Part shown: in pieces, positions 27,291 to 59,117 of the stretch
How the letters are laid out: each line of letters begins with the position of its first letter
Numbering within the stretch: position 1 is the first letter of the stretch
Source of the DNA: Paraphysomonas bandaiensis
Lineage: Eukaryota > Protista > Chrysophyceae
Length of the DNA: 64,000 bases
Assembly (NCBI GenBank): GCA_965644295.1
Contig: CBFFRP010000198.1
Span: 1-64,000, forward strand
Reading direction: 5' to 3'
The notes under the pieces: generated by a model
Databases searched by the model: none
What the model was told of the DNA's origin: nothing
The model's input: the letters and a program-made list of their open reading frames with translations, nothing else
Position numbers and translations under genes: made by a program

Positions 27291-29439
27291 GAACTCAGGT
27301 TGGGACCTGAGAGCCAAACTCTAAATAAGCTAAAACTCGCTTTAACAGAGAGAATGCTGCTTATTATTAACCTATACTACTTCTGCAGTACTAAATGCTT
27401 CTCGGCACCCCAAGAAACTAAAGCACAACTCACCAGCTATGCAGTTCAGTACTAAACAGAAAAGTGACGAGCTACAACAACCAACAAAGAGAGAACAAGC
27501 TTAACTAAAAAGAATGACGATGCGCTTGGGCGTTGACAGCCACACAGTGACTAAATCCAAATTTTCTGCGAAGGAGTGACGATATTTATGAATATTCTTG
27601 GAGAATTCTTCCTCTTCATACTCTACACATTAATGTATGGACTCTGCCGTATACGCTCTGAACTGCTGCTCATCTAAACAATATTGAGCACTCGACCAAT
27701 CAGCATTGAGAATAGGGAAAGCATTGGCTCAGTATTCACTTCCTGTATTTATACAGTGTAGGGTACAGTATACTGACACCGTATACCTACGAGTGATATA
27801 GACGCATACATACGATAGAGGAATACTGCAAATACATCATATACAGTGTATACGGTATACAGTGCGGTTGCTGAGAGGAGATGCTGCTCGCTCCTAACTG
27901 CCATCTTAATGTGATTGCAGCACACATACCGAACATACTTGTAAGCGAGCAGATTATCGTGAAAATTGAACAATATGTCCAGAGATGCATTACCATTGTA
28001 CTCGCTAAAGACCACTGCTTCTTCAATTGCCGATATAGAGTACGAGGCGATATAGTATATTGACTGTGCAGCATCAGTACGAGGGTCCACACAGTGTGAT
28101 GATCAAATGGAAGGTACCGTAAAATCATGTAATCAGTACGTACAGTCATGACAGGTGATATATAGGTCCTTCTCCCAGACAGAGACGGTCTATGGCAACC
28201 CTTAGTCACCATTGATTGGAAATGGATATATGCACCACACAGAGGCACATAATAACGGTAAAGAAGCCGCAGACGCATCAACTGACTGCAGGAAAAGCAC
28301 GTATACACTGTTTACGTACTATAGGTGATTGTAGAAGCTACATATGTGCATTTACAGGCCACTGGTTGAATATAGAGCCATGTACACATATATACCATAT
28401 ATTAGGGTAAGGATACAACATATATATATATTCTGTAGAAGGGTCACAACCTATACATATATGTGTGGGTGAAAGAGAGAAACTAGGTTAGTATGTACGC
28501 ATATATATATGTATACATCCAAACTGTAATAATAATAACTCTTCAAAAGAATTATATATCACAGCCCAGCATATAGAATAGAAGATAGTGCTGATGATTA
28601 TAAACCTGCTTTAAACCTGCACAGGTTTACAAAGGCGTCCCTCAATGGACTTCTTGATGTAGAACCTTCTGCCACGGCTGTGGACTGCAACATTCATGGC
28701 TAAGAACAAGCACAGGCTTGTAAATAAGTTATATTTAGATACAGCGATTGGTCATGCCAAGGTAACGGGATATGTATACACTGTATGCATTATATTTAAT
28801 AATATTAAACGTTTACGATGTACAGATGCTACGTGCCATATCCGAAAGGAGAATATTTATACTAATGCGTGATGCCGTTGTTAGAGAGTGGCGAAGTAAT
28901 GGTGCAGAGGACTCCTGACCGCTCAAATCGGGGCGCATCTTCAACAGGTGGGGCAGATCGAAATCCCAGAACTGAAAAACGACCTCGAAAAAAACGGCAC
29001 ATTGTTAACGTTGGTGTCCTCGGCGATGTCTCGTTGCTTTTTGATTCCTCCAACAGCACAATTAAAGAGCCACAGATGCTGGCAGAAGCAAAGAAGACTC
29101 CACAGAGAACATACTGGATTGAAGCTACCAGGAAGGAGGTGCACAAACTTGAACGAAGGACATGCTGGAAGATTGTCCGAAGGCCGAAACACCGAAAAAT
29201 CATAAAATCTAAATTGGTCTTTAAAGTAAAGCGCGACCATCTTGGAAAAATTAAGGAGTTCAAAGTTAAAAGGGTTTACTCAAGAACAAGGAGTCGACTA
29301 TAATGAGACATTCTCCCCAGCCAGTAGCTAAAAAGGTGTATCATTTAGGCTAGCACTGGCACTGGCTCTGCGATACAATCTGCAACTCCGTCAACTCGAT
29401 GTAGAAACTGCATTTCCGTATGCGGATCTGGACGAAGAC

Positions 29440-30572
29440 GTGTTTATGTCTCCACCTGCAGGAATAGATATTCCACAAGGATGTTGTTTGAAGATTCTGA
29501 AGAGTTTGTATGGCCTAAAACAAGCGCCTCGAAATTGGCACTCGATGCTAAAGGACAGTATCAAGGCGATGGGGTATAAGCAATGTATACTTGACCCATG
29601 TTTATTTGTACTCAAGGGTACTAATAATAACCTACATATGATACTTGTGTATGTAGATGATATCATTGTGCTAAGTCCTGACAGCCGTCATATTGAAAAA
29701 GTCATCAGCGCATTTAAGACTCAGTATGCCATGCAAGATATGGGTGACCTTAAGCATTATTTAGGTCTTACCATTGAGCGTCATAATAATGGCCAGATTA
29801 AGTTACATCAGTCTGCATATGCTAAGGATGTTGTGGTTAGATTCAATCACTTGTTGTCAGAAAAGAAGAGACGGTGCAAGGCAACCACACCTCTACCACC
29901 TGGCCTAAAGTTGTCCAAGGATGCAAAAGAGGAAGAAACTCGAAAACAGAGAGAATACGTTGATGCATTTCCCTATCAATCTGTTATTGGTGCCCTAATG
30001 TATTTGGCAGTGCATACTAGACCAGACATGGCATATACAGTAAATCTTCTCTCCCGGTTCACCACAAGACCCACGTACGCTGCATGTCAAGCTGCTCTGC
30101 ATACTTTATTGTATTTAGAAAATACAGTTGATCAAGGTATCATATTTCCTAATTTCACAGATGAAGACCCTCTATGTGTATACTCTGATGCAGATTGGGC
30201 CGGAGATCTGGATACATGCAGATTCACTACAGGGTATATCGTATATCTGTGGGGTGCTCCAATTGCATGGCAGTCCAGATTGCAGCCAACAGTGGCTACG
30301 TCGACTATGGAAGCTGAATATATGGCTGCATATGCTGCAATTCAGGAGATTGTATGGATACGAGGGGTGATGACAGAGCTCGGAATTCGTGGATTTGAGC
30401 TCAGTAAGAATGCGTCTCCAACAATCTTGAATATGGACAGCAAGAGTGCGATTGATCTAGCTCAGAACCCAGTAAATCATAAACGTTCCAAGCATATTCG
30501 GATCAAGTATCATTGGATTCGAGAGCAAGTGGGAGACTGTATCGTCAGGCTGAATCATGTGCCAACGGCAGA
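29440..30572 (+). pseudogene. pol: Copia RT/RNase H ORF fragment
   Basis: 382-aa ORF with RVT_2 and RNase H motifs; upstream frameshifts; truncated by the insertion. Confidence 0.9.
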
Positions 30573-32284: not shown

Positions 32285-33080
32285 CCAACGGCAGAGATGA
32301 CAGCAGACGTGTGATGACTAAAGCCTTGTCCGAGAAGCTGCACTATCAGCATGTGCACACTATGGTATCGCACTAAGTAGACTTGCTCATTACAGTATAT
32401 TCTGATATGTTCATTGAGTGGGAGTATTGAACTACAACCAACTCCTACGTGCGTACTTGAAGTTTGGTAAAGCCAATCGCTAGTAGTTATCCTGTATTCT
32501 ATGTAGCAATGAAATACAGAATATACATGACTACAGTATAGCAGTAGCTATTACAAGTATACAAAGAAACTGAAAATATAGTAGCTGTTAAAGATATAAT
32601 TTGTAGAACAGAATGTTGATGTTGGTGAATGACGTGGTTCCTAACTCACAGTGCTACAACATCATAAACTTACTATATTTCCTATAACATCAATCAGTCA
32701 ATATTGCACTAACTAAAAGCGTAAATTAATACTTGAGCCGCCTGCATACCGAAATATTCCTTGTAACTGCTGTCATCATGCATGTTGTTGTTTAACTGTA
32801 ACGCAGTAGAGCTGACGACGTATATGCATTGCTTTCAGAGGACGACGGTGTGTCCCGTGAGATACAGACATCATGCCAATATAAGGTGCATTAGACATTG
32901 CAGGCATGTTAAGAGGCATATAGTGGGTTCTACATGGGACATACATAATAGTAGAAACATTGTGAGGTGTAGGTGATATATGAGGCATATCAGTAGATAT
33001 TTAGCTATCAACAACGTCCGTTTCAGCAACATCACGGCTGGCACAGGCCACACAGCAACAAACTACAGTGTTGACTTGTG

Positions 33081-36080
33081 TGTCAAGTTATAACACAATT
33101 GGATGATTACTAAGTTAACTGGACGAGTATTCACTCATTAATCAAGTTAAGATAAGAGAAGATTATAATAAATATAATAAGCAATATATCACGTTATCTC
33201 TACTACCACTCATTTCTAGTACGATCTTACATCGTCATGATATCACTTCTCATAATACAGCTCATCACTACTGTATTCTCCAGTAACCGTCATAATTCCA
33301 ATATCTTAGAATTACAGCTTTTAATTGCTCAAACAGCAAAACTCAACACTCCCTCTCAATTCAAAGCTGTACATTGAATTGTCAAACCACGAGTCATAAC
33401 TGACGGGCGGATACGCAACCACCAAGACCTCATGAGCTGTACATTGAATCTTCACATCGCAAGACATAATTGACGGATACTATGTAGATTGAATCCTCAC
33501 ATCACGAGACATAACTGACGGGCAGTATTACAGCTTTTAATTGCTCCAACGGCAAAACTCAACACTCCCTCTCAATTCAAAGCTGTAGATAGACTCTTCA
33601 TATCACGAGACATAACTGACGGATACGCAACCACCAAAAACCTCATAGGACAAACCGGTGGACGTATGACTCCGACGTTTCAGCAAGTCTCACCATAGAC
33701 AACACATCTGAAAGATCTTCTGTCTCTGATAACAGCACGTATGGTTTCTTATCCTTGTCACTGAGATCAATCACACCACATCATTCAACTTCAACGCTAA
33801 GTTGCGAGCACCCTGGCTGTCAGGAAGAATGGAGTGGGTTCGTACAACAATCGAAGTCCCACTTCGACCAACACCCCCCGAAGCCACACCAGTTCCTGCA
33901 TGCCAGCAGACTGAAGCAAATCAAGGCAATTAACAAACTTCGCATATATTGTGACTTTTGGTCTCTCTACAATTAGACATATTATGTTAGTTATTAGAAC
34001 AGTCACTGTCATCACACAGATTGACAATCTCCTCATCATAAAGGTTTACCTCACCCAGGGTGGACACACTAGTCAACACCCGTACGCTTACCACACAAGT
34101 CTCCCTAGACTCAGCAGGTACAGTCTCACAGACACGATTCACGCTGATCTCACTAGACTTAGTATACACAGTATCACTAGGCAAAGTACGAAGGGACATT
34201 CTCTTCCCTGGAATCTCATCCGCCGTATAGACTTATTGGGCGCACCACCCGAAGCCGGCGTGTAGATGAAGATCCACCCCTTTTTCCATCACAAAAACGA
34301 GGTTTTTATAGTACAGCCGTCTCACTAGATACAGCACCCGCACTACTCTCTGGCAAAGTACGAAGGGACACTCTCTTCCCTGGAATCTCATCCGCCGTAT
34401 AGACTTATTGTGTGTTCCCCACGAAGCCGGCGTAGATGATGATCCACCCCTCTTGTCGACACAAGAACGAGGTTTTTAGTACAGCCGGCGGTTATACACG
34501 TCTATATCGACTATACGATGGCCGAACTCTGCAACAGCTCGAACCAGTGGGTCACTCTTGACAACAACCGCCTCAAGCTCATCATCGATAGCACTCCATC
34601 TATCTCATGAGGAACTACTCTCATCATATATAACACAATGGACACGACTCCTGATCACTCGCACCCCCATCGATAGCACTGCACCCCAATCCACACAATC
34701 AGACACATAACTGAATCACCGTGCTCACACTACATCCACACGCGATATTAGACATCATTCTGATAAATATATGGGGTCTCTCCAGAGGGTTCATACATCA
34801 TCAATCCAGTCTACTTTTTCTGTCTTATGTTCGTATGAATAACCCCGATTTTCAAAAATAATACTGGTTTTATATCCTATATACTGTATGTTTCTACTGT
34901 ACACAGCAGTATCACTCCTACTTCTCTGTCCAGTTTCATTCCAATGGTCACACTTCAGCTGTTGCTTCCAACTACCATCCGCTACCATGTCAAGTTATGA
35001 CACAATTGGATGATTTACTAAGTTAACTGGACGTGTATTCACTCATGAATCAAGTTAATATAAGAGAAGATTATAATAAATATAATATAGTTATATTTAA
35101 CCACGGGCAATAAGGAGGCTATATCGTCCCGCGCTCAAAATTTTGAAACGAGGGCAAAAAGCCCGAGTTTTAAAATTTTGACAAGGGACGATACTCCTTA
35201 TCCCTAGGTTAAATTGTAGCTTATCCTCATGACGTTGAAAAGTTAATATTACATTGTATAGCTATTTGTAGCATGCTTGCTGTATAAAGACATAGATGTT
35301 CCCTGATTAACATTAAGAACAAAAATGAGAACTCATATAGTTTCAAATCAATGATATGTATACTGTAAGTGTGATGATGAATGTGAACAGTTGAAGGTGA
35401 AAGAGAGGCTTCTTATTCCCTTAATTAGCATCATCATCACATTTATATACAGCAGGCTTTACCTTTTCAAGTACATCTGATCGAATGATGTGTGTATGAT
35501 ATGAGGCACACAATATCATGAGAAGCACGATATGGCTCAAATTCTGAAAGAACTGGGTGCCACTGCTCCTAACCAGCTATATAGCATCAGATATGGTCTC
35601 CTGTAATGTTCTTGAAGTTTTTTCGAAGTCCTGGATATGAAGACAGATCACTTGCACTGACAGCAGTCGAAGGATGGAATATAACTTGAAGTGTCTAATG
35701 GTTTAACTCATGATTGTGGGTTCTCTATAATTGTGTGTACTATAATGAAATCACATATATACGACTGTCATTATCATACTTTGGATAGAAGTGAGCTTCT
35801 GTTGAACCCAATATTGAAGTTGAATGTCTATATTTGCCCGGTGCTGATATGAGCGCCCTGTTGAGACAAAATCAGGTCAAAAAAAGCTTTTTTTGAGACA
35901 AAATGGGGATAAGCGATATATCACGCTATCTCTACTACCACTCATTTCTAGTACGATCTTACATCGTCATGATATCACTTCTCATAATACAGCTCATCAC
36001 TACTGTATTCTCCAGTAACCGTCATAATTCCAATATCTTAGAATTACAGCTTTTAATTGCTCAAACAGCAAAACTCAACA
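33081..36080 (-). mobile_element. Non-autonomous copia-derived LTR element (TRIM/LARD-like)
   Basis: LTRs 33081-33348 and 34988-36080 (split), TG..CA. TSD TTGTG on both sides. PBS TGGTAGCGGATGG. PPT GAGAGGGAG. RNase H remnant MQELVWLRGVL..PTPFF; internal duplications. Confidence 0.92.
35088..35908. mobile_element. 0.8-kb insertion in the 5' LTR with terminal ~118-nt hairpin (possibly Crypton-like)
   Basis: Absent from the partner LTR; ATA overlap at the junctions; long imperfect palindrome 35096-35213. Confidence 0.7.
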
Positions 36081-36270: not shown

Positions 36271-36821
36271 CATTGTATATAATAGGCACCACAGTATATT
36301 ATGTTTTAAGGGAGGTCCCTTAATAGTAGATCCCATCTAAACTAGTGGATTTATAGGCTATCCGGACTAATAAAATTAATTGGGTGCAAGGAATCCATAT
36401 GCGGGAGCAACGAACAGGAAGTGTAACACAATTGCAAATAAAATGAAAATAGAGAGTGATAATAACATCTCCTATTCATCATTACATCAGTATTTATTAC
36501 TAGTTTACATATCATATACTCTCGCTGTCAACACAATGCTCTTCACTGGACATGTTTATAGATATCACAAGCAACATACATGTGTGGACGTGAGTTCGCA
36601 ATATCTCCCGAGGCCCACGAGACCTCTGAAAGCGTCGTGACGCAGTTATAGGACCGCGCAGACATAAACCATAAGCAAGCAACATAATATTCAACACCAG
36701 ACACTTTGAGTCTGGGATAATCCTTTTCTACTAGAGTCTACAATACCGCTCTGCAATATCTTTCAAGCATACACAGATTCATACCCACAAAATAAATATG
36801 GCAACCGAGAATCGCACCAAC

Positions 36822-39800
36822 TCACAGGTTTTTACCATGCAGCGTATCCGCCACCCATCGAGCAACTTCATTGGGAGTTAGCACTAAGGATCCTCGAATG
36901 TCATCATGTATCGGTGGATCATCAGGATGCAAGAAAGCTGCTAATACACGAGGGAAATAGACACTCTCTCTTGTCGATCGGAGGTCCATAGGATATCCTC
37001 TTGCCAGAGCACTTGTTATCTGACTTTGAATCCGAGTTCTAAAGTTGGGGTCAGCATACCCTTTCCTTTGAATTAAGCTATCTGACTTGGTAATACAAGT
37101 CATCGTAGGTATTGACGGGGAGGGAGGTTTTGGTCTCTCAATTCGTGATATGCTGCTTGTGGCAAACCCAACGTCCCATTTATTAAGCTCTTTTTGACTG
37201 CAAACAATGATACTGGCAGACGCCATCTGCCCATACAAATCGTTCACTTTAGCAATAGATTCACTTTCTCTAACGGCAACTTCAGTAGTATCCCCTAGCC
37301 CAATCGTATCAAGCACACAAAAACTCTTGGGAACACCATTGGAATCAACACCAGTGCACGGGAATATCTCGGGTACAGAAGTTCGTGATTCATATCCGCC
37401 TCCATACGAAAGATGATTTGGACAAGATCGCATATTTTCCCGCAGTGCTGTCTTTCCACTTTCAGTAGGCCCGCGAATCAGCACAATTGGCATTTGTTTT
37501 ATGGCGGCTTTGAGAGTAGCACTTAAAACAATCAATTTGACTCGTCTGCTTATAACCTCTACTGCGTGTACGGAGAGTAATTCATTCTTTTGATGTAACT
37601 TCATAACTTTAGTGGGATTTTTGATGTCCACATTGAAACGATCTCGACCAGGAAACAAACTGTTCACCATATTCTGGTAGTCATCAACGTTTGAGTTCTC
37701 CGTCAGCTCCCAACACCGCGCGCAGGCGTTTTTAAAAGCTCTATCCTTTTCACATAGACTTGCGTCATTTGGATATCTTACTTTTAACTGATCACAGAAT
37801 GCATCTCGAAGGCAAGAACTTGAGACTAGGCAACGCTGTGACCACCCCTCGGAAAGTTCGTTGGCTGCAATTGCAGCCAGGGCACAACCATACCCTACAC
37901 CTCCAGCAATCAGAGCAATCGGAGTGCTTATGACAGCTACAACAGCCGTTGCAGTCAATAGTGCAAGAGACCCCAACAAAGTGCACTCGGATGCTAATAC
38001 AATGATTTCTTGGACATGAGGAGATCTTAAGAACCTTTCGATAGATGCTTCAGCGGGACCTCCATCTTCTCCAGACGGGTTGAAGAACAACCAGATAGGG
38101 GAAATGAATGTGGTCAGCGGTCCAGCTACTCCCACCATCAGTTTTTTCAGAAACAAATCATAAGTGTCTTTAGACTCGCTGGGCATGAGCATATCTCTTG
38201 CTTCGAAAAGTTCGTGACATATTAGACCCAGAATTTTCCCCAACACCAGCACATCATCCGCTTCTTCATCGTCGCGTATGGTCATCAAATCATATCCAGA
38301 AATGGCCAGTTGTGGTTTGCTATGAAATATATTGCTGTCAAATATCAAGTCGGGGAAGTCTTCTACAAATTTCTGCAAATGCATGGGCAATGTGAACTCA
38401 GGATCACACTTCTTCTTCTCCTTCTGATGCTCCAAAATACTTTTACTGTAGCATTTCGCTACGGCCTGTCCCTTAAAGCTGGCTTGCAGGATCGACTTTA
38501 TTTGAGAATAATGATCCTTCAGCCACCATTCAGCGAGGGGTGAGCCAAACACAAACCCCACTTCAATAGGAACGGTTTTAAAAATATTGATCACCACATT
38601 GCGCAGATTATCAAATTCTTCACTCACGTCTCTTGACACCGCTGTAACGTCTCTGGTCAGTGTAAGTATATGACATGCGTAGTACAACATAGACTGAAGA
38701 TTATTGTGGTTAATTGGTGGGTCGTCGTGAACAATCGTTACGTTGAGGTGGTCACTTTCTTCATTCCACGCAAAGAAAGAGCTGGTGGTGAATTTACATG
38801 TTCCAACGGCAGGCTGAAACTTACTTGGGCGAGGACTAGTTGGACCTGATATAAATAACGCCTTCGAACTTATGTAATTCACAGTGCAATCACCTCTCGT
38901 GTCTATGTGTTCAATGAATCCACACTGTTTCTTCTCCTTCTCGCGCACTGATGAAAAACAAAAGAAGTCTCGCACGCCATACAAATACTCTCCCTTGACT
39001 TCTACAGATACCTTTCCTTCATGGATGACATCACGCAGCACCAGTTCATGAATGACAGGTTTCTCCAGCGTCAGTTCATCAGGAACTTTGCTCGTAAAGC
39101 TGTCATCGAGATCGGGGAAGTTAAGCCGTGACATGTAGGAGCTTCCTAATTGGTGAGCATCCCTTATCCGGGTAGAAATAGTAAACTCCGAGATATCGAA
39201 AAGTTCAGTTACAGCTGCATCAGAAAGAGAATGAAACTGATCTTCACTATTAACCTTGAAAAAAGTGCCAATCGGCCGATAAGTAATCAAATCTAACACA
39301 AAGTTCGAGCCGCGCACAAAATTCCCGGCAGCTGTACCCAATTTGTTTCCAAAGTCTCTGGCAGATACTACCAACATCTCTTCATTCATAAGAGATTGCA
39401 CCAAATTCACAACGCTACCGGCACATGCCTTTAAAGTAGCACTCGCCGTTCGCTCCAGCACTTTTCCAGTTATGTAAGCTAGTACGTGCTGTGTCCACGT
39501 CAATACTTTAGGAACCACATCTTCAGAATGGACAAAGTTCCAGAAGCGGGATTTCAAGGTATCGTTCATACGATCAACCAGCTCTCCACTTGCAACCATG
39601 GGTGAACCGAAAGTTATGCATCGAATTTTTTTTCTATACTTACTTTTGTTTGCGTGATTATTAAACTCATCAAAAAGAGATATGGCCAGCAACTGGGCGA
39701 CAGCACCACCCAGGGAGTGTCCAGTTATCACAATTTCATCGCCCAATACAACGCGGTCATATAAATAACTCAGTGGGAGTTTGCTCATGCGGCTATACCA

Positions 39801-40166
39801 TCCGGAATGAACTTGTCCCGGTTTCTGAAAGGATGGCCAGGCTGAAGCATTCGCTGCCCAATCAGCTGCCCGATGGCTTCCACGGATAGCAAGATAAGTT
39901 ACATTCTGATAAGTTACATTCTGGGTAGCATCAAGTTGCAACAGTTGTTCATTATCGGGATTATCGATCAAATATTTTCGCTCAGCTATCAGGTAATGAC
40001 CTTCACTGTCTTGATCTAATTCATTCGATACCAATATTCCAGTGAAACGATGTTGCGTGGAGCTTAGATTAGCTTTGATTCTGGCAGCATCCGCTGTGTA
40101 GACTTGCTCACAGAGAGTGCCACAGTCAAAAACTACACGCTGCATATTAAAGTCAACAGTTGCCAT
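36822..40166 (-). CDS. Class-3 lipase + TM hairpin + P-loop GTPase fusion protein (intronless, 1114 aa)
   Basis: AIRGS..DW, VHSG, TGHSLGG, TFGSP, DVVP, YRPIG, AH; hydrophobic hairpin at ~aa 730-770; GPTESGKT, RT, DTIG, TKSD. Confidence 0.9.
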   Translation of the reverse strand: MATVDFNMQRVVFDCGTLCEQVYTADAARIKANLSSTQHRFTGILVSNELDQDSEGHYLIAERKYLIDNPDNEQLLQLDATQNVTYQNVTYLAIRGSHRAADWAANASAWPSFQKPGQVHSGWYSRMSKLPLSYLYDRVVLGDEIVITGHSLGGAVAQLLAISLFDEFNNHANKSKYRKKIRCITFGSPMVASGELVDRMNDTLKSRFWNFVHSEDVVPKVLTWTQHVLAYITGKVLERTASATLKACAGSVVNLVQSLMNEEMLVVSARDFGNKLGTAAGNFVRGSNFVLDLITYRPIGTFFKVNSEDQFHSLSDAAVTELFDISEFTISTRIRDAHQLGSSYMSRLNFPDLDDSFTSKVPDELTLEKPVIHELVLRDVIHEGKVSVEVKGEYLYGVRDFFCFSSVREKEKKQCGFIEHIDTRGDCTVNYISSKALFISGPTSPRPSKFQPAVGTCKFTTSSFFAWNEESDHLNVTIVHDDPPINHNNLQSMLYYACHILTLTRDVTAVSRDVSEEFDNLRNVVINIFKTVPIEVGFVFGSPLAEWWLKDHYSQIKSILQASFKGQAVAKCYSKSILEHQKEKKKCDPEFTLPMHLQKFVEDFPDLIFDSNIFHSKPQLAISGYDLMTIRDDEEADDVLVLGKILGLICHELFEARDMLMPSESKDTYDLFLKKLMVGVAGPLTTFISPIWLFFNPSGEDGGPAEASIERFLRSPHVQEIIVLASECTLLGSLALLTATAVVAVISTPIALIAGGVGYGCALAAIAANELSEGWSQRCLVSSSCLRDAFCDQLKVRYPNDASLCEKDRAFKNACARCWELTENSNVDDYQNMVNSLFPGRDRFNVDIKNPTKVMKLHQKNELLSVHAVEVISRRVKLIVLSATLKAAIKQMPIVLIRGPTESGKTALRENMRSCPNHLSYGGGYESRTSVPEIFPCTGVDSNGVPKSFCVLDTIGLGDTTEVAVRESESIAKVNDLYGQMASASIIVCSQKELNKWDVGFATSSISRIERPKPPSPSIPTMTCITKSDSLIQRKGYADPNFRTRIQSQITSALARGYPMDLRSTRESVYFPRVLAAFLHPDDPPIHDDIRGSLVLTPNEVARWVADTLHGKNL

Positions 40167-40223
40167 GCTTCAGTATTCAGAAACAGTATATGCCGTAATA
40201 AGATTGCTGTAATGAAATATTCG

Positions 40224-40889: not shown

Positions 40890-41575
40890 ATATTGAAAGT
40901 CTTTTTATTTAGCAATAGGCGTTAAAATCCAGCACCAATATAGTGGCTAGTTGAATGCTAGACATACTAGTTAGACCTCTACCCATAACTAATCAGCACT
41001 AATTCCATTATCCTACTATTTGACGCTACGGAAGCTACTTGTTCGTCGCCGCAAGCACCAAGGTGCTACCACTTCCGTTCTTAATGTTGTTTGTGAGTTT
41101 CGCCCTGCTCGTGTGTCTTTGGACTCACTGGCGCGTGTTGTCTGGGGGCCTCCCCTTGGGATAAGGTTCCATCAGGCTCTGAAGTACAGGGTTCTGCATT
41201 AAGGTCCGAAGTGTACCTAGCACTAGATGTGTGTGCTGAGAGGTGAGTGGTGTGGTGGAATGTGGCGTTGTCTCCGTCAGGCATAGGTGGAGTTGCCGGA
41301 GACGGCGTCGTTGTCTAGGACCTGATGGCTTCATGCGGTCCGGTGCTTTGTTCCTGCGTGTATGAGAGGTGGGGTTCGTGTGTGCGGTGGACGGTGTTCC
41401 AGTCTCGAGTCGTCTTTGGACTCCTAGTAATTGTAGCACCCTTGGGCGTTTCCATTTCTGTCTCTGAATGATGGATACGAGGCATACATGAAGATCTACC
41501 AGTAGTCTCTTCATTGTACCACTCTCATACTGGAGAGTTTCCGAGTGATACTTTGATTGAAGTTTTTGGTCATAT
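40890..41575 (-). mobile_element. Diverged relative of the 30573 retroposon (ORF end KGRPPDNTRQ* plus conserved 3' UTR)
   Basis: Aligns with 30574-30850 (ATATTGAA..TTTAGCAATAGGCGTT..CGTCGCCGCAAGCACCAAGGTGC). Confidence 0.8.
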
Positions 41576-43594: not shown

Positions 43595-44563
43595 ATGTTA
43601 ACTAATAAACCATTATCCCTTTATCTTGCATGGTTAATCCCATCATCATTATCATTCATATCATCTCTATATATTCTTTATTATATTATACATCAAAACA
43701 AATTAAGATCACAGTGTTATCATCAATTAATTTTATTATTAGCTATTACAGATTTAATACAAAGTGGTAATTGGTTTATTGGTCCTAAATATACTGCAAC
43801 ATATCAACAATGTGCATTACAAGAATATTTATTACAAGCTGGTACACTTTATAAATCATTTACTACCTTGATTATATGTAGTATTGCAATGTATATTGTA
43901 CGATTAAATAAACATCCACCACAAAAAATTGTATTACAATATACTTTTATGATATTATTAATACCAACAATGGCATTAATTTTATCAATTTTATTGCATT
44001 CAGCTCGAGTGTTTTGTACAGTGGATATTAAGAGTTATAATGAGGCTTCTCACGATGGAAGGGTCGCTATATTAGCATTCTGGTTATGTTTTGAAGTCCT
44101 GGTCTACCTTTGCACCTTTATTGATATCATACTATTGTTTTCAATCAGCAAACACCTGAAGGAGTCTCATTCCAACCTCTGTGGAAGGAACTTAGGTATC
44201 TTGTCTACCGCAAGTGGGAAGAACACGAGGGATTATCAACAAACGCTATTCGTGAACAAACTCCGTATATTTCCCTTTATCGTAGCCGTTTTGCTGATTC
44301 CTGATTCTGTCTCACTGATGGTAATTCTATTGACAGGGAGGGGCGCCCTTACCCTCAGATTAATAGCTAATGCTTGTTGGGGCTCAACTGGATGGATCAT
44401 TTCCATTGGCTATTTCTACTTCCAATATACTCATCATTCACAAATGTCGAAAACCGTAGTGGTTAAACGCGTGTTGCCTGTATCTAGCCCTGTAAAGAGT
44501 TTGGATGCGAGTGCCACTCGTAGCTCTGCAACTGTCGTCGATACTGAAGATGCGAAAATATAA
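43595..44563 (+). CDS. 7TM GPCR-like protein (GCR1/cAMP-receptor-like)
   Basis: Seven hydrophobic segments; LSFISS, LILLLAITDL, C.LQ in ECL1, basic ICL3 KLRIFP, TGW in TM7. Confidence 0.8.
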   Translation: MLTNKPLSLYLAWLIPSSLSFISSLYILYYIIHQNKLRSQCYHQLILLLAITDLIQSGNWFIGPKYTATYQQCALQEYLLQAGTLYKSFTTLIICSIAMYIVRLNKHPPQKIVLQYTFMILLIPTMALILSILLHSARVFCTVDIKSYNEASHDGRVAILAFWLCFEVLVYLCTFIDIILLFSISKHLKESHSNLCGRNLGILSTASGKNTRDYQQTLFVNKLRIFPFIVAVLLIPDSVSLMVILLTGRGALTLRLIANACWGSTGWIISIGYFYFQYTHHSQMSKTVVVKRVLPVSSPVKSLDASATRSSATVVDTEDAKI

Positions 44564-46148: not shown

Positions 46149-49100
46149 TCATGAGACAGCACACTGTGCTCCTGCTTGGCTATCTAGGTCGTCTTCAGCC
46201 ATATCGCTTCGATTCAATTGCCTGACAGGCTGCTCCCCCTCTCGACTTGTCCCCCTCTCGACTGTATATACATGTTGCCCTGATGTGTTACAATCAGCCG
46301 TCCTACGCGATGTTGTTGGCATCTCGTTAGGTGAAGCCTGAATACGCAGTGACTCCACCGCACTACTACCCTCCACAGATACGTCGTCCTGCATTTCGCC
46401 CTCAGTAACTGAGGATTCCACCTGGTAAATGTCCTCCACGCGAGCAGTTCTGAGGTCTCGGCGCATATAGAACAGCACATACGCTGACGGAGACACAATG
46501 TCACGCGAGGATGACACAGGCATGACCATAGAGTCATTGTAGCACCACCACTTCTGACTGAGTGGGATGGTGGGGGATGGAGGAGGGGAACCACTGCTAT
46601 CCATATGCGATCCCCCCAGCACAGACTGTATGTGCCCATTGTCGTCCCGCACAGTGGATATATAGTGACCTCCGCCGAGCGCACCCACATGGTATACCGC
46701 ACTGTAGAGGTCATAGCTGGTGCTACTTGAGTCAACTTGGATATCCTCCGATACATTTGACGAAACACGGGTATCTAAGCTGGATGCCCGCAACAACTCA
46801 CGTTCTTCCTCCTCCTCCGCAATTACGAGGTCAACCACACTGCTGTTGTGGCTCATACCTGGAGTGCCCGAGCCTCCACTGACATCATCCTCAGAAATAG
46901 TCTTGTTGCTATCAACCACATCATGGCCACAGCCATTCATTTCTCCGCACTTTGAATTATTGTAAACATAACCCTCTGGTGTCACCTGCCCTGTATCGCT
47001 GTACATTTCACGAGCACTTGGAGCTAGAAAAGGCCGCATATCTAAACCTTCCAGAGGGAAATCAACCTGGAATTGAATCATGAACATCATTGCAAAAAGT
47101 TAATCTAAAATACCTGATTGGTTAGCTTTCTTCTGGAGTAAGTATTGAACTGAAATCGTTTGAGTTGAATTATTAACACCGGTGGAAGGCGCCACAAAGC
47201 AAAACTCCGTCTGAATAATATATTAGACAGTTATTCATTGCATGAAGAAAACCTGCCTCAGGCAACCGTCATCATGACATTTCGGGCACACCATATCATC
47301 CAAAGGCTCTTCTTCAGTGAATTTCTTTAGACATTTATCCAGCGGGAGTTCCCGGGTCTAAGTAGGCAGAGTTATCACAGTCGTAGGCTGAGCGAAAATG
47401 CTTAACCTGATAAGTGTAGTGATCCTTCAACGAAGGGTGCTCCGTGACTACATCAGCTGGTTGGAGGTCTAATACTTCCTGAAAATATGAAATAAGTTGA
47501 TAAAGAATGTTGGTGATGCCTCGGAAGTGCTACACTGACCTGGTAAACTACAAAATGCCAATCGATAGCTATCCTCATGCCGTCACACAGTGCTATCTGC
47601 AATATCATTACTGACAGTACGGATGCTCATATAGTTCACAGCATACCGTAGATTCGTCATCATCGTACGGTATAAGACAACCTTCACATCTACTGAGCCA
47701 TAGGCATCTACATAATATAATATTAGATTCTGAACCGCCAATGCCAATAAAAAACATACCTGGAGCAAAAGTCGCCATTGGGAGTAACCAATCTAAACAG
47801 AGATTAATCGAGCACATGAGCAGTAGTTTTTATCTGTCTAACCTCAGAACAAACCCGTGGGGGGGTATATCTCCACCGATAGCATCCTCTGTAGCAACAG
47901 GTCGAACACGTGGATGAGGAACATCACGATCACTGATCACATCAGGCAGTGAGCTGTCTGCGCGATGCAGAGAGTCTGCTGCAATCCCCTCATTCACCGT
48001 AAAACTGCATTTGTTCGCAGGTTTATGTGATGTAACTGTAGCACTCATCATATTGGACTTCGCTAACTGAGATATCTACCAATATACACACAGTGAGGTG
48101 CTACAATCCAATAATAGTGCATGTAGCGTACCGGTGATTTCAAGTACATACCAACCCTCTCAGATACGGCTTCATACAATTGGGTGGAAGTTATATTCGA
48201 TGGAAGAACCTCTACTAATGGTAGCCCAACAGGATCCATTTTAAACAGCTCAAGACCACCATTATTAATACATCGCAATCGCCGGTGCATGAATACAACT
48301 TCAACCTGTGTGCATACGTGACATTGAAAATAAATGTTGACAAGTGGGCCATACCACACTTTTGGTGAGTGGAAGAGAGGTTGCCAATTTCTCCGGTCTA
48401 GAATACTCGTCAGATGTATACTCCTCAGTGTCTTCATCATTTGCAGGCAATTGCATGTGGTGGGACTCCATCTCACTTGCACTCCCTGCCCGGCTTCGTT
48501 TACCCTCCCGCGGAGTAACATTAGGCCCCTCATTAGCCGAACGCTTCACGCGATATCCATCCCCACACAAACCAACACCATTCTCATTATCGCTATCATC
48601 CATACTAACTGTTGCAGCAGAACTATTATTAATCATATGGCTCCTTCGAGGCAAGGAGTTACACTTATAAGTCGGGAGCTGCAGTACCTATAACATGGTG
48701 TCAATGGAGTTTACATGCAATTTAGGACAGAGTACTTGGTAAAAGAAAATGTTGTCGCTGTCTCGAACAGTATCTAATTTCCGATCTAGAGACGGTAGTC
48801 CAAACGCCTTCATCTGAACTATCTCGACAGCTAAAAATACAGAGTCCTTGGATATACCAGGAATGCTGTACTCTCTAATCGCATCTACGACATTTCGAAA
48901 AGACCCGCACTTTGGGACCCGTACGCTGCAAGTAAAAACTCCGAGACTTTCTTTCACATTTCGAGGTACCACATGAATAACCATCGATCTCATTTCATCT
49001 TCAGGAAGAGGAACGGACAGCATATTGAAGGGTTCAAACCTAGCCGAATTGTATGTACACCGAGTACAACGCGTGATGGACTTGAACTGACCGGTAAATA

Positions 49101-52100
49101 TCGCTTGGACTACAGAGAAATCCCTTTTGAGATGATTCTGCCACCAAATGTCTGCTAACACCACATCTGGGCGGTCATCACTGTCCGGTTGTTCAGTATA
49201 TGGTTTATCATGAACTAAATTTAAATCTTCCGATAGTCCATCGAGCAGAAACGAGAGTAGCTACACCAAGTGCACGATTAACGAAAACAATAGCACATTG
49301 GGATAGGGGACACACACCTCCTGAGCATCGTGTTGGTCATCGCCCGCAAATTGATCTCGTAACGCTCCAATTTCTCGTCTAAAACGCTTAGGAGAGACGC
49401 TATATGGACCTGCACCAGCTGGAGAACTGACACCTACTCCCATCGCACCGCTCACTGCACCAGTAACCGCCGCCAGGGCTCCCCCAAGATCTGACTGACG
49501 TGAGAGCCACAAGTCACTGACTAGCTTACTGAACGCCAACGCTACCCTTCCTTCATACCCATGTTTGTTGGTTGTGTTGAGGTCCTTCAAGTACCGTTTC
49601 GTAAGAAAATATTCAACAAGGAAGCTCGTGTGTAAAAGGGCTTGAAGGGACGCATTCATATAACAAGTGTTACCCAGGTTGTCAAGGCCCACACGACCGT
49701 TGTTTAACACCATCGAACCCTCACGCATGCTACTACCCATCGATGCTAAAGAAGATGATGAGTCGTGCCCACTGATGCCATTTTTTTTACTCTCTTCCAA
49801 TTCTAAAAAACTGTTACACAACTACACCATTGCAATGTGCATCTGACCTAGTTGATGATGAAGCTGGGACTTGGGCCACGTACCATCACTGAGGGCGCAC
49901 TCTACTAGCAGAATTTGTCCATCTTGAAGACATATCTGTTTCACTTGTTAGATGCCTATACATCATTTCATGCAAAAACCTTTTCAATCGACAACTCTGG
50001 AGATAAAATATAATGCTTTTTCCAGTTTTTGTTATCAATATTCCAAAGGCGGATCTAAAGAGGTACTGTTAACAAGAGGACATATGCGAAAAAAACAGTA
50101 ACCTTCGAAGGATCAGGAAGGTATCGCGTTCGACAGAGCTCCTCTGTAATCTGCTATATCATCAGTGCATCGATCTAGAAAATATGTAGCGCTGATATCT
50201 CACCTCTGCAATTGTACTTGTCCAAGAAAACAGCATCTCAACGGTGTAATTGTCTCTACATCAACATAAGCTTAGACGCAGCACAGTGCTACCATGAGAG
50301 CGGGTTTACATACTTCGGCTTTCCATTATCGTCACAAAAGTTAAACTTCAAGCAGGGCGGGAATAATTCCAGTGTGGGGCGAGTGTCGATAGCTTGTGAC
50401 GATACCAGGCGAGACACGACAGAGCGAACAATCTGTGCAAAGTGTTAGACAAAAATGCAGCATATCGCCATGCTGTACTGTAGGCGGAAGAGTCGATCAG
50501 GTATAATTTGTTTCATCAGAACAACACCATATCTCATATGTCGAATACCGCACCTTCGGTCCTCCACCGTACCAAGACTGCACCGCACTGAACACTCCAG
50601 GTGGTATCACTTCGAAATCTTTCCCTCGCAAGGAACCCTATTACCTCATCATCTGACAACCAGCGGATGATTTACATTTTACGTACCGGGAGCAGTTGTT
50701 TAGTAGTAGTGGATTTCTTCAGTATTGTCCAATTATCTATCATAGGTGGTGGAGGTTCTTCCTGAACAACAGTGCGTTACTATTACTAAAGTGTAGTCGT
50801 GCATGAACTTACATGTCCCGCTTCGCCAACGAACTTTTGCCACTGTGACAACCACGCGCTAGAAATGACACACCACTTCGTTCCTACTGGTCCAAATGGC
50901 AGGCGTTGAGTCTGATCGGCCGCCTGACCATACACTCATCACATGCAACGAGCACATACACACAGTATTGATGATTAATCTACATGCAAGATCTTACCCA
51001 CCTCCTGGCTCCACAAAACGGTGATGTACTCCATTTCGAGTTCCGGTGTGGCAGGTCGGAGGCCAAACAGGCAGCATGCCGTCATGGCTAACATTTTTAA
51101 TCCTGGGAGTTCGTCAGCATATGCACATATCAATTGTACATATCGCTGCAACAGGAGGCCAGTTTCTTTCTCGATGGCATCGAGATCACTCTTCAAATTT
51201 TCGTGACCGCTCGGAACGTAGGCAGCCAACGGAGCCTCATGAGCGGGACTTCCTGGATCACATGCCGCTTTGGGCAGCGCTAGAATATATACCAGTCTCC
51301 TAAGCTGCTCCGCAGAAACTACACTAGGATCTTCTCTGGAGCTCACGGATTGCTGTTGCAGGGCAACACATAATGCAGACGCTTTGTCCTCATCGCTCGA
51401 GAGACCATACACCATACAGAACTCCGCAAAATCCACAAACCGCCACACCGTCTTGAGCGGCCTGTCCAATTTAGATCTAAAGATAATAAGGGCTAGGGAT
51501 GGGGGCAGCGAGTTCGCAGTCCAGGAAAGCCATGCATCCTCGGAGAGCTCTGCTTTACCTGCGCCTCCGTCTGAGCATCGAGAATAAAATACCTATATGG
51601 GATACAAAGGAAACATTTGTAAATATAATAATTCGAGGAAGTGTTTCAAACCTGTCGTAATTGGTCACAAGTAGACTTTGGCACCCCATATCTTGCCATC
51701 ATTTGTTCACTTTCGAGCGCTGCGGAATACTGTCTCTCTAGCGAAGCTAAGCGAGGAGGAGGAACCTCAGCAAATATAGTGAGGGTTGCTTGAACCCACC
51801 CAGACATTACACTTAGTTGGCCAGGATAGCTCTCGAAATCCCTTTGAGAGATAGCATATTGAGTCAGACTGGTGGAGAACAAGTCATTCAGTTCCGATTT
51901 CGCTGCTTCCTTATTGAGACCATTCCCATAGGCTAAAATTATTATCTTTTCAATGCGTTTTCGATCAAGTTCATGACTGCCAGGATACACGTACACTCGA
52001 TAGAGAAACTTTGTAAGGGCCACACGATCATGTCCACTCACAGCTGCGAGAGAAGATATAAAATCTTTGACATCTACTTTACTGTATATATCTGCTGCAA

Positions 52101-52356
52101 ATGCTTGATATAAACACTCACAAAGTGCTCTTGGCTATATATAAAAAACAAAGTAAGTCAAACATATAAATTAAATATAAATTAAATCACTTACCATACA
52201 ATCAAATTGTGCTGAAAGTATTTTATTAAATATTCCATAATCAATATACCGTCCACACACTTTATTTAATTGTGTAGTTAATCGTTTCCATGTATTGACA
52301 CCAATAATCTCAGATGCTTCTCTAGGATTATAATAACGTGGTTGGTTATTACCCAT
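46149..52356 (-). CDS. USP32: Ubiquitin-specific protease, USP32-like (myristoyl MGN, EF-hand region, DUSP, USP domain, CaaX CAVS); many introns
   Basis: GLDNLGNTCYMNASLQ, QHDAQE, FTGQFKS..C..C..SARFEPF, LWRLPP..LKRF, VDFPLEGLDM, YHVGALGGGHY, YNDS, SAYVLFY; C-terminal CAVS. Confidence 0.9.
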
Positions 52357-52649
52357 AATTGAATAGAAATGAATAGAAACTCTTCTCTTCTTTCCTTTTC
52401 CTTCCTTTCCTTGTTTCTCTTTCTTTAAGTTGTATATTGAGATATGTAGAACATGATTTGAATAGAATGAAAGTAATCTATAAAAATAAATCAGATTATA
52501 TCTAATTAAATGATAGTATAAATTGAGAAGGATGTATACTTACATGTATATGAGGAAATGAATGGAATGTAGGAGTGATTTAGTATGATATTCTAACTAA
52601 TGGAGAGTTAGATAGTTAAGTACTAGAGATATAAGGTACCTTGTTATTG

Positions 52650-52795
52650 TATCAGCAGTCTAAGTTTTCGGAAATAAATTGAAGCAAATATAGTCTATAT
52701 TACTAACATACAACTACGGCTGGAATACATATAATTGTTGTCTCAATATGAAAGGCATTTCTGAACAAAAATAGACAAAGGATGTTGATACGATC
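52650..52795 (+). mobile_element. ~150-bp MITE copy
   Basis: Aligns with the copies at 15077 and 20776. Confidence 0.8.
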
Positions 52796-53052
52796 GAACC
52801 CGTACCTACATCTCTATATATATACATATACTATATAGAGTAGTGTTGAGTGTGGTATACTATACTTCCTATTCGCTTTCCTATACCATTGTCCCTCTGT
52901 ACCTCTGTACATACATACAGCAGTACATACAGTATGTATATTCTAAATATAATTGTCAATTTTCAATGTACAAAAACCCTACTTTTCCCTAAGAAATATT
53001 CCACCTAGCTCTTTGAAATATTCCACCCTATACAATTCCCCATACCATGTCA

Positions 53053-53493
53053 TACATACATACATACTACATACATACATACATACATACATACATACAG
53101 TACATACATACATACATACATACATACATACATACATACATACATACATACATACATACATACATACATACATACATACATACATACTACATACATACAT
53201 ACATACATACATACATACATACATACATACATACATACATACATACATACATACATACATACATACATACATACATACATACATACATACATACATACAT
53301 ACATACATACATACATGCATACATACATACATACATACATACATACATACATACATACATACATACATACATACATACATACATACATACATACATACAT
53401 ACATACATACATACATACATACATACATACATACATACATACATACATACATACATACATACATACATACATACATACATACATACATACATA
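53053..53493 (+). repeat. (TACA)n microsatellite
   Basis: Visible directly. Confidence 0.99.
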
Positions 53494-53628
53494 CCTCTCG
53501 CTCATATGCATATTCACAATCACATACAACCCTCACAATCATAAGACACACTTATCAAACCATTCAATCCATAACCAAATAACTCTATCATACAACATTC
53601 TTTTCTCTACTATCCTCTCAATCAAATC

Positions 53629-54323
53629 ATGGTATAACTCTCATAACTAACTCTTCCTATATATTAATATAACTTACATATACAGATTAACTTTATATTA
53701 CTCGTTAGTCGACAAGGTAAAACAAGATTAACAAAATGGTTTGTACAAAAGGATGCAAAGGTTATTAATCTCTTATATATACATCATTCATATTCATGAT
53801 TTGATTATTAGGATAAAACACGTTCAGTCAGAGAACTTACTGCATTAGTACTCTCACGTCCTCCAAAATTATGTAATTTTATTGAATGGCGTGATAAAAA
53901 AGTAATCTATAAAAGGTATATATTCAAATACTTTAATATATATATACTTAATATGTTTTATAGATATGCTTCTTTATATTTTATTGCATGCGTTGATAAA
54001 GAAGATAACGAGTTGATTACTCTTGAAAAGATTCACCTCTTTGTTGAGATCCTCGATAGATATTTCGGGAATGTGGGTTTGTTCGCACTTTATATATTAT
54101 GAATGTTTAAATTGGTCAAATCTAGGTATGTGAACTGGACATCATTTTTAATTTCCACAAGGCGTACTATATAATGGACGAGCTCTTTATTGGGGGATAT
54201 TTACAGGAGACATCAAAGGCGGAGGTTCTTCGTGTATGTGCTGCAATGGATGAGATGATGGACGAATCTAAGGAGGAAGGCACTACACCTGGGCGAGCCA
54301 ATGCATCCAGACCAGGACGATAG
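53629..54323 (+). CDS. AP1S: AP-1 adaptor complex sigma subunit (5 exons, first exon ATG only); not in the ORF track
   Basis: M|[19 protein letters not shown]..|..[20 protein letters not shown]|[29 protein letters not shown]|[25 protein letters not shown]. Confidence 0.95.
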
Positions 54324-54564
54324 AGAGACGATGTTGTTTATCTGTGTTTCATTTCGAGTATGGATCGTTACTTCTTCTGGTATATTCTATTATTATTGGC
54401 CGGTAGCATACAGGTACTCAACGTAGCAACAAATTGTGTACAAAACGGCTTAACCATGGAGTTGCATAATCAAATAAAGCTTTCAATTGAGTAGTATATT
54501 ATCAGCTACACACAGCGGTAATTAGTCATAGAGTCATTGCGACTTGTACCAGGCTTAAGGGTTA

Positions 54565-54890
54565 AGGGCTTGCGTATCAATTAATTGTCAATTATTGAAA
54601 TTGCAATAATTGAAATAGGGACATCAAATCAAAATAGCAAATATAATTGACTCCAGCTCGCTTCAATTAATTGATATAAAAAACCACCTTATATCATAAA
54701 AGTTGTTAAAAAACGGAATTTTTATTAAAAAACTTGCATACCACAACCAATAAGGTTGAAAGGATGTTCAGTATTCAGTAGAGCTAAGATTGTTATGACG
54801 GGCTTGCGCAAGAGCTTGACTCCTCAATATTTAAGATGTAGCTATATTGGCAGCTAGTGTATTTCAGTACTAAATATAATTGCAATTAAT
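54565..54890 (+). mobile_element. hAT-like MITE, same family as 11187-12306
   Basis: GGGCTTGCGTATCAATTAATTGTCAA...GGGACATCAAATC and GCAGCTAGTGTATTT match both ends of 11187-12306, inverted. Confidence 0.7.
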
Positions 54891-54894
54891 TTAG

Positions 54895-55355
54895 GGTTAA
54901 TTTATATAACCTTGAGCATTGGCTACTGATCATAGGTACAAAGTACAAGCCCATTAGCTGTTAGCATAGAAGAACTTCTACGGATTAGGGCACGGCAGGA
55001 CGCTGTGGAAGTTTCGGTATCAGTGAGTCAAGTGTTTCTAACCTGAGATCATGGACGAGGGGGTAGATTGGGACTCCGGCGTGTCTTGGAATGCCTTGGA
55101 CCGCGAGTTGCTTGGGCCTGGGGAGAGGAGTAGCTGACGGAGTTGGCATCGTGGCGTGTCCGCTGAGGAGGGGGTAGTGGAAGAGAAAGGGGACCTGAGA
55201 GGGCGCGTTAGGTATCGGTATAACACGTAGTAAGCGTAGAACACGCGGTTTTCGCTGTGTGTTGCCACGTGTTAGACGTTGTCTGGGGGGAGCTCGCGGA
55301 TTCCGCCATATGTTTTTTCGTGTTTTGCCACATGCATTGATATTTTCTTGCATTT
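54895..55355 (-). mobile_element. Probable retroposon 3' fragment related to 40890-41575
   Basis: GC-rich island; RKPRVLRLL versus KRPRVLQLL; CCCCCAGACAAC (PPD) motif shared. Confidence 0.5.
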
Positions 55356-55676
55356 GTAGTTTGAAATAAAAAAATGTCTCAAACTACCACATGTATACTT
55401 TTTCATGCTACAATCAGAGTTTGAATGATCGTTAAAGAAAAGATAAGATTATTATGTAAATATATATATATAATTGCGTTATTTTTTATAGAGCTGATCA
55501 CCATCATAACTTTATCATTCTGATAGCAACCACTGATAAACTTCCGTACCTTAAAACGCCGTGAAAATGATACATACTTCATTTCGTAGTTATGTTGTAG
55601 CTAAACAGTATTTTTGCTACGTATTACCGTTTTTCAAATTGTATTTAACGAATTGCTTTATCTTAGAGAAACATAC

Positions 55677-57555: not shown

Positions 57556-59117
57556 TTACGACCATACAATAGTTCTGTCATTACACATACGCATGAAATG
57601 GTTAACAAGTTTATTTCTGAGGACAGTGTGCTCATTTTCAACTTCAGTACTTATAGATTCAACTGTATCAAACATTGAACCACATAGATGCTTAGGATCT
57701 GTTAGATCTGTGTCTCTCTGTACTCTAATAGTCACTTCTGTCATCTTTCCGTTATCATGTTTGTGAACTTTAAATGATCTGTCGATATCGCATAAGTCAT
57801 GATGTCCATCTGGTCCATCCCATTCCACACCGTGCTCCCACATCTTAAACAAGTTATCATCTCTCATGATTTTATTGTGAAGACAGCAACATGTGAAGAA
57901 GACATTGTCAATCTCCTCTTTACTCTGAAGCATAATAGGAAGTTTTAGAATTCGGAAACGCCCCTTGAGTACGCCGAATGTGCATTCGATGTCCTTTCGA
58001 ACTGATTCAAGCCACTTTGACCAGATTCTTAGTAGGTCATGTGCAGATGTATTCTTAACTGGACACTGCATGCATCTCCATTTATGATATCCTCCATCGC
58101 AAATGAAATATAACCCCTTTATCTCTTCTTCGTTGTCATTGTGTATATTCTTCAATTTAAATTTAATTTCAGAATAAAGAGTCTTCGTTCTGACACTCTG
58201 GATTAAGGAATCATACTTGACTATTGTCTTGTCATTACGGGATCCAGGATGGCCTGAAGTATAGCTGCAATAATACGTCTGGAGTGGGTGCATGCCACCG
58301 AATAAGCTAATGTGGGATAGCCTTCTTTTCCAACATGCAAAGAACGTAATGATGCAGGACATCTATCCCAATGAATATGCACAACATCTGTTGATCCAAT
58401 AACACCAGGAAGCCCTAAGCTAGCATAAACCTAACAACAACAAATAAATAAGCATAATTTAAATTAGCAGTTGGCTTAACACACCTCTATTTCACGATCT
58501 ATATCCTCAGGTGTCGTTGGCATGTGACAAACCTTCGAAAATTTGTCCCTCGCATATAATTGACAGAAATCGTGAAAAAATACACGATTAACTGAGATTG
58601 ATGCTCCATTAAGCTCAGAAATTCCATCAAAACACATTCCTCGCCCTAATACACGCAGTACTCCGAGGACTAGTAAGTCAATTGGTGTTGATTTGCGACC
58701 TATAGTACACAGTTCTAAAAAACTTAACTATTGGAAACAGGAGAAATACCTGATGCGTCAGTATCAACGATGGGCTTCCCTGTTAACTTGTTCTTACGAA
58801 GTGATGAATCTTTAGCCCATTCAACTATCTCTTGAAACATTTGATACGGAATTCGAAAACGCGTTCTGAATTGCTTGCCTGATGCAGTGTGACATGGTAT
58901 ATAATACAATACCAAAAGTCATACCTTCACGAGTAGTGGGATCTCTCATCCGTGCATCCCTCAGCAGGAGTTCCCATGGCGTGTTATCGTAGTCAATCCG
59001 TTCGTAGACATTTCTTCTTGCAATTATACGATCCTCACTAGACACTCGAGATTGCTTCAAGAGCTGTTTGATCAAGGATGTCCTCTTCTTTTTATGCAGT
59101 GACAACTTCCGGGACAA
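57556..59117 (-). pseudogene. PIF/Harbinger transposase (spliced, frameshifted)
   Basis: FRTRFRIPY, VLRVLGRG, GSTDVVHI, GSRNDKTIV, DGGYHKW, LESVRKDIECTFGVLKGRFRIL, CCCLHN. Confidence 0.88.

Follow-up and report, generated by a model that had tools for sequence, protein, structure and literature searches.

What might a protist do with a protein in which a lipase and a GTPase are carried on one chain? The question is raised by a gene of the chrysophyte Paraphysomonas bandaiensis in the first 64,000 nucleotides (nt) of contig CBFFRP010000198.1 (GCA_965644295.1, positions 1-64,000, forward strand; this whole stretch is referred to here as the window), where a single open reading frame (ORF) at 36822-40166 on the minus strand encodes 1114 aa uninterrupted by stops. 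By motifs and predicted structure the product is a class-3 lipase with an intact active site joined to a TRAFAC-class GTPase, and it belongs to a family that spans eukaryotes and is apparently undescribed. The reading favoured here, with modest confidence and by analogy, is that of a lipase gated by GTP that inserts in membranes and serves cell-autonomous defence or cell death linked to defence. The initial annotation had proposed a GTP-switched lipase used in defence or cell death; its domain reading has stood for all four parts (lipase, Ig-like segment, hairpin and GTPase), while the immune role is supported indirectly, by turnover at one genomic site, an EDS1-like lipase and fusions to caspase and HECT domains. 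The innate immunity of free-living protists is poorly known, and the family offers a candidate that can be tested as a single gene, combining an active-looking lipase and a GTP switch with a turnover like that of NLR and het genes.

Protein architecture and transcript

The ORF is intact and all the motifs named in the initial annotation lie where they had been placed. The sole Pfam match was to Lipase_3 (residues 91-223, E 5.6e-22), while an AlphaFold2 model from 56 aligned sequences (mean predicted local distance difference test (pLDDT) 81.4, predicted template modelling score (pTM) 0.74) comprises five parts, namely a class-3 lipase, an Ig-like sandwich, a helical body, a hydrophobic hairpin and a TRAFAC GTPase (Table 1). 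The pTM of 0.74 over 1114 aa suggests that the modelled domains pack into one compact assembly. For the lipase, the alpha/beta-hydrolase fold, the GxSxG elbow and the Ser-Asp-His triad are all present, with DVVP at 39510-39521 and DAH at 39153-39161 (minus strand), and the helical insert within it is the least conserved region of the family (mean pairwise identity 0.14). The segment earlier likened to IPT/Ig folds forms a beta-sandwich in the model with weak structural matches (Z 4.5-6.0) to the transglutaminase N-domain, plexin, EBF and Sec5 IPT domains, and no Pfam TIG match was obtained within it. The best helical row for the helical body was Z 5.1 with no Foldseek match at E<=0.001, this part never having been searched by itself, and the barely searched residues 777-890 gave no clear match in the PDB. 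The hairpin comprises 42 uncharged residues with a Kyte-Doolittle 19-mer maximum of 2.24; a hydrophobic peak is found at its position in 32 of 42 relatives, and it likely inserts in membranes.

The GTPase was missed by Pfam in this protein and was found by profiles and the structure model, in keeping with the C-terminal GTPase first read from its motifs. G1 (GPTESGKT, 37449-37472), the G2 threonine (Thr929, 37380-37382), G3 (LDTIG, 37299-37313) and G4 (TKSD, 37080-37091; all minus strand) are present on a predicted Ras-like fold, with profile matches to Der, Era, IF2, IRG and septin. The DxxG motif is followed by the hydrophobic Leu957, where Ras has its catalytic Gln. GTPases without the Ras Gln, such as GIMAP, Toc34, septins, IRG and MnmE, are usually activated by dimerization or by cations.

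The start codon aligns with that of P0001, a relative 53% identical to this protein, and a gap-free colinear contig of 3570 nt from run X3 ends just beyond both ends of the ORF. The run was typed as RNA by an automatic guess, and contigs alone are no proof of transcription, such that this contig of a probable RNA run supports an unspliced mRNA, in keeping with the intronless gene of the initial annotation; being gap-free, it also rules out a hidden intron at a 21-residue insertion near residues 65-88. In a polyA marine metatranscriptome (X11) coverage is deepest at the 3' end of the gene, and the gene is probably transcribed in cultures as well as in marine samples. Its DNA is present in public runs from 13 studies, with alleles across the compared runs 0-1 base apart and the differences in the ORF amounting to one synonymous and one low-depth change. 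Runs X22 and X23 bear the species label of runs that contain the gene in full and have next to none of its words; this shortage may reflect presence/absence variation, a different strain or weak expression.

Three features of context had been taken to set the gene apart. The absence of introns in an intron-rich genome is real but not diagnostic, with long unbroken ORFs also found in other genes of the genome and introns apparently present in two paralogues. The AT-rich 5' end is likewise absent as described, but it is also absent from RPS2 and RPL4 (GC content of the first 300 nt 0.42 here and 0.46-0.48 there), and both arguments were dropped since other genes share these features. High-copy repeats do flank the gene on both sides, and this argument was dropped as well, such repeats being common across the genome.

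Relatives, paralogues and turnover at one site

A word search with the single protein recovered only P0001, and an exhaustive HMMER search over 1.84 billion representatives was then used, Pfam having left three quarters of the protein uncovered. Among the best 150 HMMER matches about 33 are full-length relatives of 850-1370 aa with a lipase elbow and a P-loop, and of those looked up nearly all stand alone when clustered at 90% identity. They come from stramenopiles, discobans, an amoebozoan, a choanoflagellate, a rotifer and a glaucophyte (Chromulina, Thalassiosira, Rhynchopus, Willaertia, Cavostelium, Salpingoeca rosetta, Brachionus and Cyanoptyche), with a moss protein of the same layout in Sphagnum jensenii; the closest full-length relative with a named source belongs to the chrysophyte Chromulina nebulosa. 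Sub-alignments of close and distant members match over 838 columns (probability 100). Of 31 full-length rows, 30 retain the triad Ser and all 31 the Asp and the His, and conservation of the G motifs is comparable, in relatives only 20-30% identical; near-invariance of both sets of motifs in some 30 distant relatives indicates that the two enzymes have been selected together.

In a lipase tree, which was quick, had no bootstrap and included no EDS1 sequences, the family groups with caspase-lipase fusions and plant-like lipases (Shimodaira-Hasegawa-like approximate likelihood ratio test 96); ordinary bacterial lipases, plant OBL1 and two bacterial-type lipase-GTPase fusions lie elsewhere in the tree. 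The fusions P0046 and P0071 join a caspase domain to a lipase of this broad clade. The lipase-GTPase domain pair is present in databases as hypothetical proteins, and no description of the family was found in the full-text literature covered, from which subscription journals are mostly missing. A scan of viral contigs, sensitive to close relatives only, returned no relative.

The host assembly (62.6 Mb) has four members of the family, this gene and one each on C210, C357 and C454, the spliced paralogues having been compared as single ORFs with their exons unjoined. The member on C357 is from a second subfamily. That on C454 (G000:C454, L047 3505-8525, minus strand) has the elbow serine replaced and carries a hydrophobic segment, a GTPase and a HECT ligase (Pfam E 2e-63). 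The member on C210 is interrupted by a copia element at ~51244-56422 of G000:C210 (L009 7245 to L010 2422) with two 100% identical 307-bp long terminal repeats (LTRs); its internal part is 97% identical to a copia remnant at 28905-30572 of the window and its LTR 98% identical to window 32285-32735, showing that the element family was recently active.

Five related eukaryote assemblies (JGI), the family genes of which branch next to this gene, carry members in 1, 3, 1, 2 and 2 copies at a syntenic site that has an ABC transporter on one side and a conserved ~1530-aa gene on the other. With four members in this genome and one to three diverged copies in each relative, the gene is not a conserved single-copy orthologue. 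The neighbours at the site are the ABC transporter, an alanyl-tRNA synthetase and the conserved large protein. The flanking DNA is 90-94% identical, with the flanking gene at a synonymous divergence (dS) of 0.11-0.19 and 94-95% protein identity; the nine genes at the site make up seven lineages with dS of 0.8-2.3 and 45-74% identity, only one lineage being shared, by three of the five assemblies. Mosaics were also found. In one pair from the shared lineage identity is 95-98% in the lipase, 97% in the GTPase and only 56% in the hairpin, and in a second pair it is 93-98% as far as residue 840 and 82% in the GTPase. Variation is greatest in the insert, the helical body and the hairpin, the last of these having the highest non-synonymous divergence (dN) of the protein. 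At dN/dS ~0.2 all copies are under purifying selection. Lineages older than their flanks, copy-number change and mosaics, the marks of a balanced locus, were all found in the five relatives, and by analogy this turnover resembles that of immune or self/non-self loci. Long-diverged haplogroups, recombination and copy-number change likewise mark the non-self-recognition genes of fungi (PMC10197012). Differential loss of old paralogues fits the data as well as balancing selection, both being typical of defence loci.

Elsewhere in the window lie a copia-type gag-pol ORF (861-4991, plus strand, 1376 aa), a 747-aa ORF (12727-14970, minus) with weak F-box and SAM matches and many ankyrin repeats, a 322-aa multi-membrane ORF with an AT-rich 5' end and a weak Git3 GPCR match (43595-44563, plus, E 0.01), a multi-exon ubiquitin-specific protease (UCH) gene (46149-49821, minus) and a fragment of a PIF/Harbinger-type transposase (57556-58362).

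Table 1. Positions in the window of the lipase-GTPase gene, its predicted parts and the adjoining repeats (res, residues; CDS, coding sequence; UTR, untranslated region).
Feature	Position	Strand	Basis
CDS, single exon, 1114 aa	36822..40166	-	ORF; start codon matches start of P0001
Probable mRNA span, 5' UTR ~57 nt, 3' end 36654 (36509 in second run)	36654..40223	-	Run X3 contig
Predicted class-3 lipase, res 1-350, EDS1/PAD4-like, triad Ser151/Asp216/His338	39117..40166	-	Pfam, VIA, triad
Nucleophile elbow GHSLGG (Ser151)	39705..39722	-	Motif position
Helical insert within lipase, res 218-295	39282..39515	-	Alignment to EDS1 insert
Ig-like (IPT/E-set type) beta-sandwich, res 365-480	38727..39074	-	Strands in model
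Helical body, res 484-715	38022..38717	-	Model
Hydrophobic hairpin, uncharged, small residues, likely membrane-inserting, res 728-769	37860..37985	-	Hydropathy
Second helical segment, res 777-890; 40-residue helix 851-890 runs into GTPase	37497..37838	-	Model
TRAFAC-class GTPase, res 891-1110	36837..37496	-	VIA Z 10-12 to many TRAFAC GTPases
Two high-copy repeats, ~2.0 kb and 0.83 kb, 3' of gene (context)	33081..35913		Repeat search
High-copy 0.58-kb repeat, 5' of gene (context)	40890..41466		At least 39 other copies at 83-91%

Weighing the possible functions

In the mechanism proposed for a defence lipase, the lipase would at rest be held away from, or closed to, membrane lipid. Binding of GTP, probably with formation of a dimer or oligomer, would be relayed via helix 851-890 to the helical body, and the hairpin would then enter the target membrane, which might be that of a prey or pathogen vacuole, a virus factory or the cell itself. 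There Ser151 would cleave acyl esters, such that the membrane is broken or a lipid signal released, and GTP hydrolysis would reset or free the protein. Target specificity would be determined by the three variable parts, namely the insert, the helical body and the hairpin.

Several observations weigh against such a role in defence. The gene seems to be transcribed without a known challenge, and the hairpin is modelled at low confidence (pLDDT <50 at residues 728-763), with one subfamily having a weak hairpin only. Positive selection, for which the initial annotation proposed a test, left no direct sign in the dN/dS ratio or by windows of non-synonymous to synonymous polymorphism (pN/pS), which was <1 in the diverged windows. 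The expansion of paralogues looked for in the same context was not found either; the four are old in the lipase tree, which rules out a recent expansion in this genome. The balanced-locus pattern is unseen at this gene in its own species, where the allele is near-invariant, the locus being hypervariable in the relatives. In the profile comparison IRG was outscored by Der, Era and IF2, giving no assignment to IRG, GIMAP or dynamin.

A membrane-anchored enzyme of feeding or lipid housekeeping, which digests prey membranes in food vacuoles or mobilises lipid droplets and is recruited at times set by the GTPase, would be in keeping with the intact triad, the probable transcription in cultures and marine samples, the near-invariant allele, the purifying selection and the clusters of similar proteins of 1016-1022 aa in land plants. 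Such an enzyme would not, however, be expected to show swapping of lineages at one site with 5-20 times the synonymous divergence of the flanks, nor fusions to caspase or HECT domains, nor a paralogue freshly interrupted by a retroelement as in this genome, and this explanation is considered unlikely. The deep lineages, copy-number change and mosaic hairpins at one site are het-locus-like and would also suit a self/non-self or selfish killer locus, in which allele-specific activation kills incompatible fusion partners or siblings without the matching allele, much as the patatin phospholipase of a fungal NLR executes allorecognition death (PMC10197012). At such a locus a linked partner or antidote gene would be looked for, but none was seen among the neighbours of the syntenic site, and the species itself appears monomorphic, making this account improbable. 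It is distinctly improbable that the protein is an EDS1-like signalling hub, its lipase fold binding a partner or small messenger by way of the helical insert under a GTPase switch with hydrolysis secondary. The alignment of the insert with the EDS1 region ending at helix H and the retention of a dead-lipase paralogue fused to HECT are consistent with a hub, but the triad is nearly invariant in the main family and the EP domain, required by EDS1 for signalling (10.1101/572826), is missing. Finally, an artefact, pseudogene or viral or bacterial contaminant, as might be suspected of an intronless gene amid repeats, can practically be dismissed given full-length relatives that start and end at the same points, evidence of purifying selection, the spanning RNA-type contig, DNA in 13 studies, paralogues with introns and no close relative on viral contigs.

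Comparison with known systems

Among solved structures EDS1, PAD4 and SAG101 are the closest to the lipase domain (phmmer, family profile, Foldseek and VIA). With VIA, EDS1 (4nfu) was best at Z 21.8 (root mean square deviation 3.1 over 249) with fungal lipases near level at Z 20.8, and the family profile scored PAD4/EDS1 at 88-95 bits compared with 66 bits for fungal lipases. The match extends through the helical insert to a common YRP.G motif, the insert here aligning in sequence with the EDS1 insert that ends in helix H, the function of which is partner binding (10.1101/572826). Where EDS1 carries the EP domain, this protein has an Ig-like, a helical, a hairpin and a GTPase part, and the catalytic triad is strongly conserved throughout the family. 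No Pfam or structural match to the EP domain was obtained, with EDS1 alignments ending near residue 352, and since this domain is missing the protein is not a member of the EDS1 family. Lipases of 500-680 aa that are plant-like and have the same helical insert without a GTPase or a Pfam EP domain (P0063, P0064 and P0113) are candidates for a link between the two families; a further lipase-3 protein of 1079 aa (G000:C633, L012 4155-7394), which has a Gly-rich segment and a coiled-coil-like region and no GTPase, is unrelated. EDS1 proteins are restricted to seed plants, and the source of their lipase-like domain before seed plants was left unexplained (10.1101/572826), such that the present family provides an outside relative for that domain. 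It is possible, if doubtful, that lipase-armed immunity GTPases form an ancient, eukaryote-wide class in which a single chain senses a foreign or altered membrane by its variable hairpin region, is activated by GTP and dissolves that membrane, and that the same lipase lineage gave rise to EDS1 in seed plants when an EP domain replaced the GTPase half.

The nearest proteins in the ESM Atlas, both by features and by structure, are land-plant lipase-3 clusters of 1016-1022 aa, scoring 0.89 by features (185-186 of 256 shared), just below the 0.9 mark, with a structural match over residues 1-482, the lipase and Ig parts; this likeness comes from features and structure and not from sequences. These ~1020-aa proteins are presumably of the Arabidopsis At3g07400 type, with a P-loop. 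At3g07400 has had passing mentions in the literature, for example as a target-list entry. In the Sphagnum protein the lipase, Ig-like segment and GTPase follow in the same order. The family points to a conserved and unstudied plant protein that can be tested in Arabidopsis.

The known immunity GTPases either cause mechanical damage to membranes or bring in other effectors, and one armed with its own lipase would, if the role in defence is true, add a further mechanism. Like this protein, IRG (Irga6, Irgb10), GIMAP/AIG1 and GBP proteins join a TRAFAC GTPase that lacks the catalytic Gln to a helical body and a hydrophobic segment for the membrane, and a myristoylation-type MGxxxS start like theirs occurs in some relatives (P0004, P0055). 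They differ in having no lipase and, in the case of IRG, GIMAP and dynamin-like proteins, in placing the GTPase N-terminal to the helical stalk and membrane segment, where in the model of this protein it follows the helical part and the hairpin at the C-terminal end. Among family members MMR_HSR1 was matched in 20 of 56 rows and Dynamin_N rarely, IRG profile matches were longer (positions 14-181) than those of most other GTPases, and in the ESM Atlas the C-terminal part was nearest to AIG1, MMR_HSR1 and IIGP clusters at 0.79-0.82, which is to be read as a lead only.

In bacteria, GTPases, alpha/beta-hydrolases and caspase effectors are predicted to act jointly in conflict systems (Kaur et al. 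2020, PMC7159879), which are multi-gene, unlike the one chain here. The bacterial-type lipase-GTPase fusions P0289 and P0309 possess neither the Ig part nor the helical part, and the lipase tree places them outside the family. Both P0289 and P0309 (L052) are lipases fused to an MMR_HSR1/AIG1 GTPase and adjoin a second AIG1-like GTPase gene, a locus that may represent a defence operon of bacteria, independent of the present family. P0128 has a lipase of the same clade joined directly to another P-loop domain, which by eye looks GBP/atlastin-like; this suggests that a lipase and a GTPase were paired there independently.

The fungal NLR PLP-1 is a phospholipase gated by an NTPase that executes cell death from a polymorphic locus (PMC10197012). 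It has a patatin lipase fold, a STAND NTPase and a repeat sensor, whereas the present protein has a class-3 lipase and a TRAFAC GTPase without repeats and is not a STAND/NLR protein. By analogy, its mode of action probably resembles that of PLP-1, a phospholipase under NTPase control, or that of the immunity GTPases.

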